Positions 21,196-47,768 of a stretch of DNA of 64,000 nt are shown here, in pieces; within the stretch, counting starts at the first letter, position 1, and the number at the start of each line of letters is the position of its first letter. Position numbers and translations under genes: made by a program. This stretch comes from Hyaloraphidium curvatum SAG 235-1 (taxonomy: Eukaryota; Fungi; Monoblepharomycota). The DNA lies in assembly GCA_025558095.1 (NCBI GenBank), contig JAIVFI010000012.1, forward strand, positions 722,497 to 786,496, given 5' to 3'. A model generated the notes under the pieces. It searched no databases and was not told the DNA's origin. It was given only the letters and a program-made list of their open reading frames with translations.

Positions 21196-23751
21196 CTAAG
21201 GGGTGTTCACGTCGACGCATGGGCCGCCGTTGACCATGATCGTCCACATGGTTATTGAGGCCTTGACGATGGTGCAGACCGGAAGGCAGAAGCAGCTTCC
21301 GTCCGGATGCCAGTTGGCGTACGCGTACCCACCGGATGCGCAAGAAGCACCACATGCGTCAATCGGGCCGAAAGGCATCTGGACGGGCCAATCGCCGGGC
21401 CCGGGTGGAAAAACGGGGTTGACGTCATCGCAGAAGCGGTTCGCGCAGGTGGTCCTGGTGGCGGTCTGATGATCCGAGGCAGGGTCAGGCCCGCTGAATG
21501 GCGACAGACGCCGCCCGCTCACCTCGCAGTTGGTTCCCGTGAAACTCGACGGACACACGCACGAGTAGCTTCCGCCGCCGAGATCGACGCAGGTACCGCC
21601 GTTCTGGCACGGATCGGAAGCGCAAGCCGAGACGGGCACAGTTGCGGCTGCGGTCGAGCTCGTAGCCGTTTCCGAGGTCGTCGCCGTCTCCGACGTGCTC
21701 GTTGCCGTCTCGGAGGCGCTGGTGGCCGTTTCGGACGTGCTTGTCGCGGTCTCCGAAGTGCTCGTCGCGGCCATCTGGGAGCGATCCGGCCCGTCAGCCC
21801 ACCTGCTCGCTGCTTGCACGATCCCTCCAGCAGACGCACCTCGCAATCGAACCCCACGAATCCGTGCGGGCACACGCAGATGTAGCCGTCTGGAAGGTTG
21901 ACGCACGTGCCCCCGTTCTGACAGGGATGCGCGGCGCACGCGGGGGCGTTGGTTGTGAGCGAGGACGACGTGCCTTGTGGCCGTCTCCGTAGTGCTCGGC
22001 GTCCAGACGGTGGTGCTCGTGGGCAGCTCAGCGGTGCTGGTGGTCGACAAGAAGATCGTGGTGCTGGATGACGTCAGGCTCCAGGTGATCACGCAGATGC
22101 AGCCGCCGCCCGGCTGCGGGACGCAGATGCCTATGCAAGCGCTGGTCGTTGTCGCAAGGGACGCCGTGCGGGTGAGGCTATGAGACTCCGTGGTCGTTGG
22201 GGTGTAGCTCAAAGTCGACGAAGTCAGGGATTCCGAGCTGGTGGAAGAGGTGGGAGTCTGGCTCAATGTCGAGGAGGTGGCCGTCTCCGACAGGGTGGAA
22301 GAAGTACAGGTCTCGCTCGAGGACGACGAGGTCAGCGTGTCGCTGGATGTCGAGGACGTGAGGCTTTCCGAAAAGGTGGAGGACGTCACGGTTGCCGATG
22401 CAGTCTTGCTGGTATCGGCCGTCAAGCTTTGGGTGATTGAGGTCGTGGCCGTCAGACTCTGCGACTCTGAAGTCGTGGCAGTCATGGAACCGCTCTTGCT
22501 GGTGGTTGCCGTGAGACTGCGAGTGTCCGATGTCGTCGCCGTCAGGCTCTGGGAAGCAGTGACCGTACGGCTCGACGTGGAAGGCGTGACGGATTCTGAG
22601 TGCGTGGAAGACGTGAGGGTCCCCGACAGAGTCGACTCCGTGGTGCGCGTCGGATGTCGAACTTGCGTCCGCGTCGTCCGCGATGTCGTGCCGTCCGAGG
22701 TCGGAGTTGCCGCTGTCGCTGATTTCGACGCTGAAGATGTTGGCCTACCGGCTGAGGTGCTGCTCGTCGCCAGCGGAATCGGGAACGGCCGCACCTGGTT
22801 GAATGGCGGCGGTGCGCCCTGGAAGTCGATTGGCAGGCTGCCCACGGGATCCGAGGAGCTTGGTTGCCCGCCGGAGCCTGGCACGACAAGACAGACAGAT
22901 CCAGGAGGCATTGAGGCTGAAGGTGGGCAGGCAAAGACGAATAGACCATTGGCACCAGTAACGCAGTTGCAGACGACCTCCATGCCTGCGGCCCGGGTCG
23001 TCGCCATGGGGCACTGCAGTTGCAGCGGCACGCCAACCTGGGGGATGTCCCCCGGTTGGTACGTCCCCGTCCCCGTGACGTCAATGAACAGCTGGCCACC
23101 GGCAACGGCCGTCAGCGTCACGATCGAGGTCGTCGTCCGCCGCACGGTTTTGGTGGCCACGACGGCCGTCCTGGTCTGAGTGCTCGTGACAGTTGACCTT
23201 TCAGGACAGCAGAAGCGGGCCGCGCGGCCCCTGACGCGGGCGACTGGAACGCCGGAGGGACAGGAGGGGCAGAGATGGCGGGCGTAGAGGCGGCGCTCGG
23301 CCTCCTCTTGCTCCAGAGCGCCGAGTGATCCGTTGGTCCACGCGGGGAGCTGCGCCGGCCGCAGCCGCGCCACGCCCGGGATTCGGCCGGTACCAACGCG
23401 ATTTCGTGCGAAAATGGTGGTTGTCCGCGTCGCCGTGGTCCACCTAGTCCGCGTCACGGTGCGGCGGGCCGTTGACGTGTGCCACGACGTGACAACTCGG
23501 CGCCGCGCGCAGCAGCAGCCCGAATCGTAGCCGCAGCCCGCACTTGGGGGAGCGAGGATTACGGAGTGAGCCCGAGAATAATGATCACACGTCGTCTGTC
23601 CTCACCAGCAGGTGTCGGCGTAGGTCCAGGGGCCCCAGTGGACGTTCACCGGAGGGGTCGCACGCTGCAGCGCGGCGAGCTGCGCGGCTACGGGAGAAGG
23701 GAAGATCGCCGCGGCGATCAGCAGCGCCGAAAAAAGGATCAGGGTGCTCAT
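21196..23751 (-). CDS. Secreted mucin-like protein with an SdrD-B/Cna-like domain, S/T stalk and two EGF-like modules
   Basis: Signal peptide MSTLILFSALLIAAAIF; GQLFIDVTGTGTYQPGD...CVTGANGLF; CASDPCQNGGTCVDLGGGSYSCVCPSSFTGTNCE. The other EGF module is out of frame by 1 nt at about 21973. Confidence 0.75.
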
Positions 23752-29263: not shown

Positions 29264-30484
29264 TCACCGGTCCTTGCCCCGCTTCGCCCTCTTCCTCCCC
29301 CTGAACGCCCCCGGCGCCCCCGTGGCGCCGCCTGCGCCCGTGGCCGTCGGCGCCCCCGTCGCACCCGTCGCGGCCGGGGAGGCGGAGATCCCCGTCGCTC
29401 CCGTGGCACCGGTGGCACCTGTGGCACCCGTTGCTCCCGTCGCGGCGGTGGAGGCGGGGGAGGTGGTGGTCGAGTCCAGGGGGCTGGGGGTGAGGGCTTC
29501 GATGCTGGGGGTGAACTCCGAAGTCGGGCGGAGGGGGGAGGCGGAGGATGCGGAGGTGGGGGGAAACGTTGGGGCGACGGTTGGCGAGAGCGTGAAGGGG
29601 GAGGGAGAGACGGAGGAGGAGGGAGAGAGGGGGAGGGTGGAGGTAGGCGGGAGGGGGGCTGGTGGTGAAGTTGGAGGAAGGAGGGATGGGAATGACGGGG
29701 AGGAAGATGGCAGCGAAGGGGATGGCAGCAGGGAAAGCGAGGTCGGCCCCGGCGTCGCAGTGGGCCCTATCGGGGTCGGGAGGGTCGAAAGAGGCGCCGT
29801 CGTGGCAGCCGACAACCCGCCTCCGGCGGCGGTCGTCGTCACCGTCTGTACCGGCGTAGGCTCATCCGTCGGCGTCCTTGTCTTTGGCGGCAGCACGGCT
29901 CCGTTCCCGCACGTCGCGGTGGAGTTGCCCCAGCACACCCCGAACCCGACCTGGCACGCGTCCTGGCACCACTCGGTCCCGTTGCCGCAGTAGCCGTGCA
30001 CGGAGCAGCAGAACCACCCCCTGCAACGCAGATCGCCGTGCTGCCGGCCGCACCGCGCTGTTTGGGTGAAGTTCAGGTCGGGGCAGGGGCGCGTTGTGAC
30101 GTTGGGGTACGACGAATAGTCCGAGTCGCTGAGCATGGGCGGCTGGCGCAGCTCGATGTCGCTGAGGCCGTCGGGATCGTATTCCTCCGACGGAGCAGAA
30201 TATTCGTCCTCCGGGAGCAGCACCGGCAAGATGCCGGCGGGCAAGCTCGCTTCCACCGCGGCGGAAATGTCCTCGGGCGACACGTCCAGCAGCGCGTAGC
30301 CGTAGTCCCGCTCCCCCGCCGCCTCCTCTCCTGCAAACAAGGACGCGGGTTCGGGCAGCTGCGCGGAAGCGCGCGACAGGAGGAGTAGCAGGGCGGTGAA
30401 GAGCGCGGGGAGAAGAGATAGGGGGCATGGCGGCCGCGCGCGTCGGGCGGCCCCGGACCGGGTTCCGCGACCCGGACGGGGCAT
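29264..30484 (-). CDS. Secreted CBM18 (hevein-type) chitin-binding protein with P/S/T stalk and (GAT)n tail
   Basis: RCGRQHGDLRCRGWFCCSVHGYCGNGTEWCQDACQVGFGVC after a hydrophobic leader ending ASAQ. Confidence 0.85.
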   Translation of the reverse strand: MPRPGRGTRSGAARRARPPCPLSLLPALFTALLLLLSRASAQLPEPASLFAGEEAAGERDYGYALLDVSPEDISAAVEASLPAGILPVLLPEDEYSAPSEEYDPDGLSDIELRQPPMLSDSDYSSYPNVTTRPCPDLNFTQTARCGRQHGDLRCRGWFCCSVHGYCGNGTEWCQDACQVGFGVCWGNSTATCGNGAVLPPKTRTPTDEPTPVQTVTTTAAGGGLSAATTAPLSTLPTPIGPTATPGPTSLSLLPSPSLPSSSPSFPSLLPPTSPPAPLPPTSTLPLSPSSSVSPSPFTLSPTVAPTFPPTSASSASPLRPTSEFTPSIEALTPSPLDSTTTSPASTAATGATGATGATGATGATGISASPAATGATGAPTATGAGGATGAPGAFRGRKRAKRGKDR

Positions 30485-32702: not shown

Positions 32703-34182
32703 TCACAGCTCGTCCGCCGCCCCCCTCATCCCCGGCGCCGTCGCGCACACGATGCTCGTCGTCACGATCGTCGCCACGATCTCCAGCAGCGCCAGCCCCG
32801 CATCCCGGTTCCACATCCCCCGCAGCGCCTCGGTCTTGTCCTTGCCGGGGGGCATCACGAGCGCCGCGAACCACGCCGCGCACTTGCGGCCGCGCTTCTT
32901 CGGGGGGGGCAGGCCGCCGTTGGAGGAGGGCGCGGGGGTGGGAGGGGAGAGGGGGAACCACGGGCGGTGCGGAGGTTCCGGGGGGGGTTGGGGGTCGCCG
33001 GTCGCAGTCCCGGACGGGGGGACGGCGGAGTCCGGGGGTTCGGGGGAGTGCGGGGGGACCAAGAGAACGTGGTCCCCGTCCGGCGGCTGCGCGCCGGATT
33101 CGGAGATGCCGTCCGCGAGCGCGGTCTTCTCGTCCGCGTCGCCGTCCGCGGTCCCCGGGGGCTTTGGGGGGTAGTTGATACCCCAGCCCATCTCGGCGGC
33201 GGAGTACTGGAATTCGTCCAGGAGGATGACGGCGAGGTTGAGGGTGAAGAAGATGTAGGCTGCGCGGGGAGCGGTCAGCGAGATCAGAGGAGGGGGGGCG
33301 GAGGGACGCACCCATGACGTAGATCTGGTCCAGCACCACCAGGTACGTCCGGTTGAACAGCGACAAGGCCGCCTGCTGCAAGAACACCGCCGTCAACAGC
33401 GCCGTTGTTCCCAGCGCGATCCGGGAGTCGGCGCGGTCGGGCGAGACGATCAGCGAAAGCCAAGAGAGGCAGAGCACGAACACGAGGGGCAGGATCTGCC
33501 ACGCGAGGAGGAAGTTGCCGCGGGAGATGTTGACGGCAAAGACGGCGGCGGGGAACAGGGTGCCCCGCGGGAAGACGCCCAGGCCGGAGCCGTAGTCCCG
33601 CACGGCGGCGGCGGCGGAGAGGTCGCCGGCGACCCAGCCCGGGATCGAAAAGTCCCTGTCGAAGCCCGACTCGGCGACGTCGGGGAGGTACCACACCGCG
33701 TCGGCGGGGTTGGTCGAGTCCTCGACGACGATGGCGAGCGAGTGCTTGTCGACTGGGAAGGCCTGCAGGTCGAAGGCGCGGCCGAAGCGGCTGTTGGCGC
33801 GGAACAGCATCGCGAAGGTGACGTTGTCGGACGTCAGGGGGGCGTCGAAGGCCTTGGCGAGCACGGTGCTGCCGATGTCGATGGCGTTGGAGAGGTACAG
33901 CGTCGCCGTGGGGTTGGGCGTCGCGGGGTCGGAGAAGTTGGCGGCTGCGCCATTGGGGTCGCGCCACGACATCCAGAGGTCGAAGGTGCACTGCCACGTG
34001 TCCGTGGTCGGGTCAAAGTCGTACACTTTGCGCACGTAGATGCCGACGGTGACGACGAGCGCCGACGCCGGCGGGGCCTGCCCGGCCGGGCGCCGGACCA
34101 GCCGGCCCGACGACACGAAGGCCGCGGCCGGGCATGCCAGCAGCAGCGGCAGCAGTGCCGCGGCGGCGATGGGGACGCGCAT
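32703..34182 (-). CDS. Pentameric ligand-gated ion channel subunit (Cys-less, Pro-loop type); intron 33260-33311
   Basis: Signal peptide; VTVGIYV; FDLWMSWRDP; FDLQAFPVD; IPGW; pre-M1 Arg; M1 QILPL; M2 RIALGTTALLT; YLVVLDQIY into M3; M4 after a long Pro-rich loop. Confidence 0.9.
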
Positions 34183-34489
34183 CGGGACGCTTTCGCGGTG
34201 GCCGTGTGATCGAGATCGGTTGATGGCGGCTTCAGGGTCCTCGGGACGCTTGTCCCCCGCCCTCGGGGCCGCCCGCCGCGAGGGAGGGGAGAAAAGGGGG
34301 GCGGATCGGTCGGACTTGCATTCCATGCACCTGTCGGTCACGTCGGACTGGGCCGGGAAGGGGACGGAGGCCGCCGTGCGCAGAATTGCGGGCCGATCGC
34401 GGCGGGCCCTGGCGGCGAGACCGGGCGGTGCTGCGCCTGCCGGCCGCGCCAAGCCCATCGCGGGGCAGGCGGGGCAGGCAGCCGCCGGC

Positions 34490-37400
34490 ATGCGGCCCCG
34501 GGCGGTCCTCGTTGTGCTCGCCGCGCTGCTGCTGATTGCGGGGCACGCGGCCGCCGCCCCGCTCGTCCCGCGGTTCCTGCTCGCGGCCATCGCGCGGCTC
34601 AACTTTGCCGAGAAGCACCGCAAAGGGGCGGCCGGCGCCGCGGAGAAGGCGCAGCGCGGGCAGCTCGGCGGGCACCGCGCAAAGCCGGCCGACGAGGCGC
34701 ATGCGGCGTTCCGCTTCGAGCGGCCGGCGGGCGTCGCGGGCGACGTGCAGTATGCCGCGAGAGGGGCCGCCGTTGCCGCGCCGCTGTGGGTCGCGGCGGT
34801 TGCTGCTCGCACGTCGTCGCGCGGGGGGTCGGGGACGCTGGCGCCGCTGGAGATCAGCCGCACTGCCAGCCGGACGTCTCGGCCAACGGCGACCGGCCCA
34901 ACGGCGACGTCCTCCGGCTCGGCTGGGACCCGAACCGGGCCTGCTCCGACCGGGACCGCGGGCGTCATTTCCGGCTCAGATACCACGCGGCCTGTCCCTG
35001 CCCCCGACTCGCCGACGGGGGCTCCCACGGGCGGCGGCGCGACCGGCGGCACGAGCAACGGGGCTGCCCAGCCGACCGCGTCGCCGGCGCCCGCCGATCC
35101 CGCTGCCCCCTCGGCCGGCGATCCGCAGGCGGGTCCCACTACGGTGCCCTCCGCACCGGATCCTGCCGCGTCTCCGTCGGCCTCTGACACCCAACCGACT
35201 TCCGCGGCGAGCGAGGCGCCCGGCGAGACGCCGACTGCCGATCCGCCCTCGCCTCCGCCTGCGCCTCCCCCCGCGGTGGAGACAACGCCGGCGGACCCCG
35301 GGCAGGCAACGACCTTGCCTGCCGCACCCTCCGCCACGGGAGGCGCACAGACCGCCGCGCCGGTCAGCCCGACCCCCGTTGCCCCGCTGACCCGGCCCTC
35401 GCGTACAACGCGGACGACCGATGCGGCGCCCGTCACCTCGGCGCGATCGGATACTGGGGGACGGATTGTCACGGGTGGGCTCCTGCGGGTGACGGGGACG
35501 AAAGTGGCTGCGGTTGCGGGGCCGACGGCGGGCACCTCGAAAGCCGCCGCGACGACGACCCCACCGGTGCCCAGCCCACCTTCCCCACCCCCGCCTTCTC
35601 CGCCTCCCCCGCCTCCGCCGCCACCCGCGGTCGAAACAACCCCCGATCCCGAACCGACGATCGCGCCTTCGCCTCCCCCTGCCCCTCCCCCGACCCCACC
35701 TCCCGCTCCGCCGCCGCCGGCCCCGGCGCCCACTACAACCACCGCTCGGCGCACCACCACCCGCACCCGCACCACCACGACGACCACCGCCGGCATCGCG
35801 ATCCCCGTCTTTGCATTCAACGGTCTGCCCGTTGCCTCCCGGCCCCTCCCTCTCGTTAACCCGCCCTTCCGCTCCAGACGTCGCCGGCGACGGCCTCTTC
35901 CAATCCCCGCCCGACACCCCCCTCCCCGCGGTCCGCATCACCCTCGACGGCCCCTCCCCCCTGCGCCTCCTGCGGCGCCAGTCCACCGTCGCGGAATGCA
36001 CCACCGGCGCCGACGGCCGCTGCACCATCCGCGTGCCCGTGGCGCTGGTCCCCGGCGCCGAGTACGAGATCGTCGTGCACGGGCCCGGCGGGCCCAGGGG
36101 GGGAGGCGGGTTCACGGTGGACGGGGGGGGGAGGCCGCCGCCCCCCGAGGGCGGGGCGGGGGGTATCTACCCCGTGGGGGTCGTGCTGGGAACTACTAGC
36201 ACCACGACGGTGGGTTCGGTTCCGCCAAGGGGGTAACCGGGGCGTGCTAAACTGGGGTTTGCGGGCAGGCGACGGCGACGCGGACGCGGACGAGGACGAC
36301 GACGGAGGTTCCGGCTGGGGTCCCGCCGCCGACGACACGGACGGCGACGAGCTCCGGCCTCTCGGGGACATCGTCGAGCAGGTCGGCGACGCCGTCCACT
36401 TCGAGCCGGACGGGGACCACGTCGAGCGTGTCGAGGACCACGTCGAGCAGGTCGGGGACCTCCTCCAGCCGGTCGGCGACCACGTCGACCCTCTCCATCA
36501 CCTCCTCGAGCCTGTCGATCACCTCGTCGAGCTGGTCGGCCACCACCTCGAGCGCGTCGATCACGACGTCCAGCCTGTCGGACACGACGTCCAGCCGCAC
36601 GGTCTCGCGGACGGCGACGACCACGAGCCGCAGCGCGACCAGCTCGTCGGCTTCGCGGACGGCAACGTCGACGACCTTGAGCGCCACCAGCTCGACCACG
36701 TCAAGGACGAGCTCGACGGCCACTCGGACGGGCACCAGCTCCACGGCGTCGCGGACGCGGACCTCGACAAGCTTCAGCGCGACCAGCTCGACCCTCTCGG
36801 AAACCGCTACGACCTCGAGCCTCAGCCGGACGAGCTCCACCTCGGCCTCCCGGACCACCTCGTCGGTTTCGCCCACGAGCTCGACAAACAGCCGGTCGGC
36901 GACGAGCTCGACCGTGTCCCGGACCAGCTCGACAGCGAGCGCGACTGCCAGCTTCACGGCGACCAGTTCGACGGCATTGAAGACGAGTTCCACGCTCTCG
37001 GTGACCGCCAGCTTCACGTCCTCGACGTCCTCGGTTGGTCTTTCACCCCGGCCGCCCGTGCTTCCATGGATGCTGATCCCCCTGCAGACCAGCCGCTCGC
37101 GGACGACGACGACGGCCGACACGGACATCGACGTCCTGTCGATCACCTCGACCGTCACACTGGCGCCCACCGCTCGCCCCTCGACCACGTACACCAACGC
37201 CTGCGGTTCCATGCCCACCCCGGCGTGCGGGGTGGTCATCCGCCCCGCCGGGCCGGCCACCTACTTGCACATGCGCGAGGTCGTCCTCGTTATCGGCGGC
37301 GCGCAGATCCCGCGCTCCGCCGTGTCGCCCTCGCTCTCCTCCGTCTTGGTCAACCTTGGGGTGCCCCTCGTGGCCGGTTTCTGCACGGATGGCAGACTGC

Positions 37401-46618: not shown

Positions 46619-47768
46619 TCACGCCTCCAGCTTGGCAAACTCCCACCCCAGCGCCGCCCCGGGCCCCACCACCGCCGCCCGCGCCGCGAACTTGGCCACA
46701 TCCGCGGTCCCCCACCCGGCCCTGGCGGCCACGAGGTACCCCGTGGCGAGGAACAGCCCGACGGCGTCCCACGCGAGGAAGTTGGCCGTGCCCATCCCCG
46801 GCGAGCTCGCGGCGGCCGAGGGGACGAACGCCGAGAAGGTCTTGCGGAGCAGCGCGGGGTCGCGGACGAAGGAGGAGACGAGGCGCAGGTGGCCGGTGAA
46901 GGAGAGCAGGGCGAGGCCGCGGTGCAGGTTGGAGACGAGGTTCGCCGGGGCGGCGGGGATTTGCTTCAGGAGGGGGTGGTCGTCGGGGATGAAGGGGGTG
47001 AAGGACCAGGCGAGCCACGACAGGGCGGGGACCTGAATGGGACGCGGATCTGGTCAGCTAAACGCTTGGATCCGGTGCCGTGCGGAAGCCCACGATCTGG
47101 AACAGCGCGATGAACTTGGCCCGCTGCGGCTCCGGCGCGGCGAGGTTGGCCATGACGTAGATGTTGGCAGCGTGTCCGGCGCAGAGCAGCGCGAGGGCCA
47201 GCGTGGTCTTCGGGGTGCTCGGGAGGGGCCCGGTCGGCGGGCGGCGGAGCATCATGGGGACCCACACGAGGGGGGTGATGAAGCCGACGCCGAACACCTG
47301 CGGGCAGAAGAGCGTTAATCGACGTCCAATGAGTGACGCCAGGGAGAGACGGACCTGCATCCCCAGCGTCATGGTCGGGTACAGCCAGTGCAGCGTCCGC
47401 CCGCCGGGCTTGAGCCCCTCGACCGACGCGTAGAACAGCCACGGCGTGATCATCCCCGCCAGCGTGTCGAGCCACGCGCTGGCAGCCGAGTCCCCGACGA
47501 CGAAGCGGAAGAACTGTCGTGCGGAAGCGTGTCAGACGCGTCCCCGTTGGAAGGAAGCGGTGCCGCCCACCGGCACGATGGCGCCCAGGAACGCGTCGAC
47601 GGGCGCCGACCCCGTCCGCACGGCCGAGATGTCCGTCACGGGGTCGTCCTTGGCCAGGCTCTCCGCGGCCGAGTTGATGTAGCCCAGCGACGCGCCGAAC
47701 TGCCGCCCGACGAGGAGGGCGAGGGGCGCCGTGGCCCACGTGGCGAAGGTGGAGAGGACGGCGGGCAT
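46619..47768 (-). CDS. Multi-TM fungal membrane protein, possibly CtvD/AurD-like, 3 introns
   Basis: Spliced model has VDAFL, YP...Q|VFGVGFITP, NFLAWD and VVGPGAAL. The family assignment is recalled from memory. Confidence 0.55.

Follow-up and report, generated by a model that had tools for sequence, protein, structure and literature searches.

A predicted Cys-less pentameric ligand-gated ion channel subunit of prokaryotic type, probably captured from bacteria, in the genome of the fungus Hyaloraphidium curvatum

The stretch of DNA analyzed here, from the aquatic, single-celled Hyaloraphidium curvatum (the window; 64,000 nucleotides at assembly position G000:C12:722497-786496, reaching the end of a 786-kb contig of 786,496 bp), holds a two-exon gene with an intact open reading frame (ORF) at 32703-34182 on the minus strand. 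An initial annotation, made from the letters alone, had read this gene as a complete Cys-less pentameric ligand-gated ion channel (hereafter pLGIC) in an apparently fungal chromosome, and the host is indeed a fungus (Fungi; chytridiomyceta; Monoblepharomycota). The gene product is the 475-residue NCBI record KAI9024880.1 (P0001 in our protein set), which carries the name 'hypothetical protein DFJ74DRAFT_719410 [Hyaloraphidium curvatum]'. We searched the host assembly (31.9 Mb, 55 contigs) and public sequence collections for relatives; the two exons were searched separately, and the public record served as the full-length protein for alignment and folding. The gene is built as follows, in window coordinates:

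33312-34182, minus strand: exon 1, encoding everything from a signal-like peptide through the extracellular domain, M1 and M2 into the first part of M3
33260-33311, minus strand: spliceosomal intron of 52 nt, GT-AG, phase 1, inside M3
32703-33259, minus strand: exon 2, encoding the rest of M3, a long cytoplasmic M3-M4 loop and M4, and ending in a TGA stop codon (32705-32703)

Translation starts at an ATG at 34182-34180 on the minus strand, and exon 1 comprises 290 codons plus 1 base (residues 1-290 and the first base of codon 291). The intron begins with GTGCGT, and CTGAC, a branch-like site, stands 14 nt ahead of its 3' CAG; its length is not a multiple of 3, and the unspliced frame runs into Pro/Arg-rich nonsense in which M4 is lost. 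The public record maps to the locus at 100% by tblastn, with residues 1-290 on exon 1 and residues 291-475 on exon 2. The splice is independently supported, because the sequence across the junction is continuous in an intronless paralog (L002) and in four orthologs (P0002, P0003, P0004 and P0015): where this gene has YVM|AYIFF, the unbroken reading is YAMAYAFF in the paralog and YIMAYV.. in the orthologs. The 52-nt GT-AG intron proposed from the letters is therefore confirmed.

The protein encoded by the spliced gene divides into the segments below; helix limits are those of an AlphaFold2 model.

34120-34182, minus strand: residues 1-21, N-terminal hydrophobic signal-like peptide, read from the sequence; low predicted local distance difference test (pLDDT) values, outside the folded domain
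33517-34119, minus strand: residues 22-222, extracellular beta-sandwich domain, with AlphaFold strands between 27 and 220 at pLDDT >90, aligned to the extracellular domains of GLIC, GluCl and GlyR
33748-33759, minus strand: residues 142-145, Pro-loop core FPVD, without flanking cysteines
33448-33516, minus strand: residues 223-245, M1 helix, P232 nearly invariant
33364-33432, minus strand: residues 251-273, M2 pore helix, with D252 at -2', R254 at 0', T260 at 6' and L263 at 9'
33183-33336, minus strand: residues 283-316, M3 helix, split by the intron
32838-33182, minus strand: residues 317-431, cytoplasmic M3-M4 loop, Pro-rich, predicted disordered, pLDDT about 50
32742-32837, minus strand: residues 432-463, M4 helix, aligned to M4 of GLIC, GlyR and alpha7

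The numbering of M2 follows a HMMER alignment with the GlyR M2 segment in the GLIC/GlyR chimera 4x5t. The extracellular domain carries WRDP at 73-76, GW at 182-183, a loop-C-like hairpin at 194-208 and the pre-M1 R221. The residues of the gating interface (acidic beta1-beta2 residues at 55-61, D145 and R221) are intact; in an 85-sequence alignment P143 is invariant and D145 is at least 90% conserved. Within the cytoplasmic loop are PWFPL at 390-394, which fits an H/R-x-P-[WYF]-F motif, a basic KKRGRK patch at 411-416 and a short pre-M4 helix at 415-425. Cysteines occur at 17, 65, 238, 417 and 462, and none lies near 135-150. C65 is the only cysteine of the extracellular domain; therefore there is no Cys-loop, the pair 13 residues apart around the Pro-loop that defines Cys-loop receptors sensu stricto is absent, and the protein is Cys-less.

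We took membership of the pLGIC superfamily from profile searches and from the predicted fold. With phmmer, exon 1 matched the chimera 4x5t in the Protein Data Bank (PDB) at 4.6e-11 and GLIC at about 5e-6. A profile built from 13 family members scored 1.8e-27 against the chimera and between 1e-22 and 1e-23 against GLIC, spanning the extracellular domain through M4. The AlphaFold2 model, computed from the 85-sequence alignment, had a pLDDT of 82 and a predicted template modeling score of 0.72, with pLDDT >90 in the extracellular and transmembrane domains, and helices at 223-245, 251-273, 283-316 and 432-463; confidence was low in the loop at about 317-414. All Foldseek matches of this model were pLGICs (GLIC at E 1e-17, TM score 0.69-0.70). 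VIA-align superposed about 290 residues (model 38-466) on GluCl, GlyR, GLIC and the alpha7 nicotinic acetylcholine receptor (nAChR) with Z 22.7-23.4, and the nearest folds in the ESM Atlas were bacterial clusters (TM score 0.81-0.87). Homology thus covers both the extracellular and the transmembrane domains, the fold is a beta-sandwich followed by M1-M4, the Pro-loop fits [FY]-P-x-D, and the pre-M1 Arg, the M1 Pro and the hydrophobic 9' and polar 6' residues of M2 are in place. Every landmark that the initial annotation had listed (signal-like peptide, WRDP, FPVD, GW, pre-M1 Arg, M1 Pro, M2 Leu at 9' and four transmembrane helices) was recovered at the given coordinates on the minus strand, and the claim of a complete Cys-less pLGIC was upheld. 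We conclude that the gene is predicted, by homology and by the modeled fold, to encode a complete Cys-less, GLIC-like pLGIC subunit. A two-copy complex prediction on residues 36-320 scored 0.01, a 'no answer' that counts neither for nor against assembly.

The closest solved relative in sequence is GLIC, the proton-gated pLGIC of Gloeobacter violaceus (PDB 3eam, 4hfi and others; E 1e-22), and it is also among the top structural matches (Z 23, TM score 0.70). Both proteins have a Cys-less Pro-loop, a beta-sandwich extracellular domain, four transmembrane helices and an acidic -2' pore mouth. They differ in that identity is only about 18-20%, that GLIC has a minimal M3-M4 linker whereas KAI9024880.1 has about 115 residues there, and that the 9' residue is Ile in GLIC and Leu here; GLIC is gated by protons, and the comparison with KAI9024880.1 is one of sequence and predicted fold. 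Direct relatives, at 33-49% identity, are bacterial pLGICs from freshwater Actinomycetota, Chloroflexota, Chlorobiaceae and Cyanobacteria (e.g., P0017/P0164). These share with the fungal copies the M2 motif R-T/I-A-..-T-A-L-L-T-.-V-F-L-Q-Q, the YPLD/FPVD Pro-loop, PGW and the H/R-D-Y-G loop, but they are 340-370 residues long, with an M3-M4 loop of about 15 residues and no introns, whereas the fungal copies have introns and expanded loops. Planktothrix relatives are named in NCBI and UniRef, in the latter as 'Neurotransmitter-gated ion-channel ligand-binding domain-containing protein'. The Cys-less pLGICs of unicellular eukaryotes surveyed by Jaiteh, Taly and Henin (2016, PMC4795631) are likewise eukaryotic, patchy in distribution and Cys-less in the Pro-loop; none of those was in Fungi, and the tree presented here was built without the sequences of that survey. 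Animal anionic Cys-loop receptors (GlyR, GABA-A and GluCl) have the same fold (Z about 23) and also a long intracellular loop, and R0', L3', G4', T6', L9' and T10' of M2 correspond one to one with those of GlyR alpha1. These receptors have the Cys-loop disulfide and a P-A-R motif, and KAI9024880.1 has neither, with D-S-R instead. Its intracellular loop is not homologous to theirs and is most likely of independent origin.

The gene belongs to a family of six loci in the host genome, which answers the paralog count that the initial annotation had proposed as a check. The other five are each on other contigs:

C15 paralog, L002:1450-2718: 63% identity, intronless, shorter loop
C16 and C13 paralogs: a pair at 72% identity; C13 has an N-terminal intron, C16 a likely intron after M3
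C27 paralog (P0016): single exon
C31 paralog: three matched segments, so two introns

A HMMER search of 1.84 billion representative sequences found 1116 relatives at E <=1e-3, the best 150 of which were inspected; a later search added P0200-P0202. Among those 150, identity above 50% was confined to three: the protein's own cluster (P0001), P0015 and P0004. The others were 24-39% identical and mostly 320-410 residues long; P0002 and P0003, from a separate search, have an identity similar to that of P0015 and P0004. The four environmental orthologs P0002, P0003, P0004 and P0015 are at 59-63% identity. A single sequencing run (SRR26194948) yielded P0002 and P0004, and a JGI metagenome yielded P0015. 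The orthologs lie on contigs of eukaryotic appearance, on which gene calls are fragmented. The P0015 contig encodes a split squalene epoxidase whose top named match, at 63%, is H. curvatum, with chytrids at about 53%; we therefore take the orthologs to be from uncultured Hyaloraphidium relatives. A tblastx comparison of ortholog contig L008 with the window found no synteny outside the pLGIC gene itself. Name look-ups for 20 further top relatives gave cyanobacterial names only, none of them fungal, and well-described orthologs widespread in fungi, which would have spoken against the initial annotation, did not appear among the relatives inspected, fungal genomes not having been searched directly.

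Ortholog P0004 (L091:10001-11251) adjoins a 681-residue gene (L091:11405-13450, minus strand) with a Lig_chan domain (PF00060) of the ionotropic glutamate receptor type. The uncultured relative behind SRR26194948 has, at this place, neighboring ligand-gated channel genes from two superfamilies.

Members of the family differ in the M3-M4 linker, which is about 15 residues in bacteria, about 55-60 in the C27 and C31 paralogs and 90-170 in a clade of long-loop members, with about 115 here. In the long clade the loop varies and has a biased composition; retained in it are an acidic start following M3, the H/R-x-P-[WYF]-F motif and an R-I-[RK]-x-R-D-type pre-M4 segment (MWNRD in KAI9024880.1). Long-clade sequences are about 60% identical overall and the cytoplasmic loop is free to vary, yet the segment from T259/T260 to L281 is nearly identical in all six of them, apart from one conservative substitution each in P0003, P0015 and P0004. 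Such near-identity, covering M2 and the M2-M3 linker, points to purifying selection acting on the pore.

Short relatives of the gene are found in bacterial surroundings. P0164 is flanked by aminotransferase genes on one side and a gal operon with LacI on the other; P0195 lies amid RecJ, an outer-membrane barrel and glycosyltransferases. We located 79 loci in GTDB genomes of Actinomycetota, Chloroflexota, Chlorobiaceae, Cyanobiaceae, Alphaproteobacteria and Saprospiraceae, mostly metagenome-assembled genomes (MAGs), many of them from lakes or rivers. Some bacterial relatives are longer: P0100 has 816 residues, P0149 has 861 and P0129 has 2697 with five matched stretches. P0100, from an Oscillatoriaceae MAG, is annotated as an ABC-transporter substrate-binding protein, which suggests that proteins of this kind are pLGICs fused to periplasmic binding domains.

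The phylogenetic check against prokaryotic pLGICs placed the fungal sequences within bacteria. We inferred a maximum-likelihood tree of 58 rows (LG+C20+F+G4, with ultrafast bootstrap (UFBoot) and SH-like approximate likelihood ratio test (SH-aLRT) support) and compared it with a quick tree of 130 rows. In the 58-row tree, 10 eukaryotic and 9 Actinomycetota-type rows formed one clade (99/99), itself inside a 30-row clade that adds Chloroflexota and Chlorobiaceae (99/97) and then a 35-row clade (100/97), outside which the more distant bacterial groups fell; the 130-row tree agreed on the nesting. All eukaryotic rows lay on one side of a single branch (77/88), equivalent to one label change on the tree. 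Constraining the 25 inner bacterial rows to group without the eukaryotes cost 36 log-likelihood units and was rejected by the approximately unbiased (AU) test (p 0.0018). Supported nesting in bacteria, together with integration into the host genome, is what a horizontally transferred gene is expected to show. The initial annotation had left open whether the gene was retained from an ancestor or acquired; the tree and the AU test favor acquisition from bacteria and disfavor retention.

Taking these results together, we consider it probable that the locus is a resident nuclear gene of H. curvatum for a prokaryote-type Cys-less 'Pro-loop' pLGIC subunit, captured from bacteria and working by a cation-channel mechanism. 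As to its history, we infer that the gene was captured from bacteria and not retained from an ancestor, and that it was then duplicated and acquired introns and a new, long cytoplasmic loop; a single bacterium-to-fungus transfer with later duplication is the most economical reading. One bacterial gene would have been captured by the common ancestor of Hyaloraphidium and its uncultured relatives, before their split, and would then have been duplicated and gained spliceosomal introns, while a long sub-clade would have grown a disordered M3-M4 loop of 90-170 residues with conserved motifs. Neither the C15 paralog nor the orthologs have the intron of this gene, and its simplest explanation is therefore a later gain.

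In mechanism, five subunits, either identical or mixed with the 63% paralog, would surround a pore lined by M2, in which a ring of Leu263 (9') would be the hydrophobic gate. The cytoplasmic pore mouth reads D-S-R here and E-V-R in the bacterial relatives, versus P-A-R in anion channels; by analogy with E-2' of GLIC and E-1' of nAChR, this mouth predicts cation selectivity. Asp252 (-2') would confer it, the bacterial relatives having Glu at that position, and no Pro-Ala-Arg motif is present. A chemical cue would bind in the extracellular beta-sandwich, the interface of the beta1-beta2 Asp, Asp145 and Arg221 would relay the signal, and the pore would open. Precedents from GLIC and ELIC for the cue are protons and small amines or amino acids. 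A non-motile planktonic cell could in this way turn an external chemical signal into a change in membrane potential or Ca2+.

Several points weigh against this explanation, some touching the channel and others its history. Cation selectivity and ligand are both read from the alignment, so that the cation-selective channel is an assignment by sequence and analogy. The loop-C motif H-D-Y-G-T-x-F-G is conserved across the family and Arg195 replaces its His in KAI9024880.1, so the ligand or response of this protein may differ from that of its relatives. These concerns bear on an alternative that we regard as rather unlikely: that the product is a true pLGIC homolog without being a plasma-membrane ligand-gated cation channel, and is instead an anion channel, an organellar or endomembrane protein, an obligate accessory subunit or a decaying copy. 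The Arg195 substitution and the basic KKRGRK patch in the long loop would suit such a role. Against this alternative stand the intact ORF, the conserved gating-interface residues, 9' Leu, 6' Thr and acidic -2' position, an M2 that is nearly invariant across orthologs, and an N terminus that resembles a secretory signal and not a mitochondrial presequence.

A further objection is that no Pfam gathering threshold was reached by exon 1, exon 2 or P0001: the sole match was to Neur_chan_memb (PF02932), whose cut-off of 28.1 bits lies above the 11.5 bits obtained, so the check by Neur_chan_LBD and Neur_chan_memb models proposed in the initial annotation failed where its companion, structural comparison with GLIC, succeeded on the predicted fold. 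With Pfam matches below threshold, membership rests on the PDB profile search and the fold. Bacterial-type relatives also score below the Pfam cut-offs, at 12-23 bits, and this shortfall of the whole bacterial-type clade explains the 'hypothetical protein' label; the low score does not contradict membership of the pLGIC superfamily.

The remaining objections concern the tree and the origin of the gene. The group constrained in the AU test was picked after the tree had been inspected, the donor is named from MAG taxonomy labels, and the tree was built without solved reference pLGICs or protist Cys-less pLGICs as named outgroups. Support for eukaryote monophyly is moderate (77/88), so more than one bacterial transfer is possible. 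In addition, pLGICs are patchily distributed among unicellular eukaryotes, including opisthokont protists (PMC4795631), a language-model search scored haptophyte and diatom clusters the same as a bacterial cluster, and the animal-like pLGIC family described below shows that this lineage has kept pLGICs. These last observations would fit vertical retention, in which most fungi would have lost a Cys-less pLGIC of ancient eukaryotic descent and the bacterial likeness would reflect slow evolution or eukaryote-to-bacteria transfers. We think this quite improbable: the ten eukaryotic sequences sit inside three successive, well-supported and otherwise bacterial clades, the AU test speaks against non-nesting, bacteria supply the top matches in both sequence and fold, and the animal-like family best matches GABA-A and GlyR whereas the family of the gene at 32703-34182 matches GLIC.

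Bacterial contamination or a chimeric assembly, with the gene from a co-sequenced bacterium, is effectively refuted: although the nearest homologs are bacterial and some have an equally high GC content at third codon positions (GC3), a bacterial source is excluded because the intron with its branch-point motif interrupts M3 and must be removed to give M3 and M4, the gene lies in a 786-kb contig amid host-like ORFs (one with a chitin-binding domain), and five further paralogs, some with introns, lie on other large contigs; the 115-residue cytoplasmic loop is, moreover, absent from the bacterial relatives. The initial annotation had argued against contamination from both the intron and host-like GC3. 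The intron is a valid argument. GC3 is a weak one, because values of 0.96 in exon 1 and 0.93 in exon 2, against 0.91-0.96 in neighboring coding ORFs, are matched by some of the nearest bacterial homologs, which reach 0.86-0.98.

The same genome encodes a second family of pLGICs. Neur_chan_LBD (PF02931) scored above the Pfam cut-off at 9 further places on contigs 1, 6, 37 and 39 (57-88 bits; loci L093-L097):

C6:45168-45806 and 47131-47763: PF02931 matches
C6:861959-862591 and 863219-863872: PF02931 matches
C1:280170-280802 and 281617-282228: PF02931 matches
C39:459761-460393: PF02931 match
C37:166327-166713 and 167882-168319: PF02931 matches

Several of these matches are in tandem or divergent pairs, and together they amount to about 8-9 genes. 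One of them (L094:1624-2658:-) matched GABA-A delta and GlyR alpha at 1e-23. The Pro-loops of all four members that we read had no cysteines (e.g., ..SFPFDRQNL..), and the M2 mouth is P-E-R. Judged by these sequence features, the second family is animal-like, Cys-less and distinct from the GLIC-like family.

The initial annotation had stated that pLGICs are usually described as absent from fungi, and the literature says so: Jaiteh et al. (2016, PMC4795631) detected none in Fungi, and a 2021 review concurs (PMC8634148). We found no published report of Cys-loop, ligand-gated or neurotransmitter-gated channels in chytrids, zoosporic fungi or Hyaloraphidium. We put at even odds the broader proposal that this early-diverging fungal lineage uses ionotropic chemical signaling through two separately originated pLGIC families, one of six bacterial-type genes, horizontally acquired and with an independently evolved, long, motif-bearing intracellular domain, and the other of about 8-9 animal-like Cys-less genes. 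If true, the view that there are no pLGICs in Fungi would be overturned, and the system would be a natural experiment on the origin of the eukaryotic intracellular domain of pLGICs. The predicted channel gene at 32703-34182 itself corrects the known distribution of pLGICs to include a fungus. On the capture reading it would record an ion channel that passed from a bacterium to a fungus, where it was retained, multiplied and, by gaining introns and a long cytoplasmic loop, 'eukaryotised'; the short-loop bacterial parents and long-loop fungal descendants would form a comparison set for the gain of intracellular domains and of trafficking or regulatory motifs. The gene also offers a tractable case for what a non-motile planktonic fungus senses with pLGICs. 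As the clade is invisible at Pfam thresholds, standard annotation under-counts it.

Around the gene, seven of the eight ORFs scanned between window positions 22000 and 46000, several of them with high GC3, had no Pfam domain at E <=1e-3, and the neighborhood is made of lineage-specific orphans. The exception, an ORF at 29264-30484 on the minus strand, matched Chitin_bind_1 (hevein-type) above the cut-off (E 1.4e-6), with a weak match to a collagen-like repeat, and may encode a cell-wall protein. Immediately upstream of the gene, 34200-36200 has the highest GC content of the window (0.76), and long open frames of Pro/Ala/Gly/Thr-rich low complexity (e.g., poly-Pro and TTPxP repeats) run on both strands; this segment may be a mucin- or extensin-like gene, or noncoding DNA.

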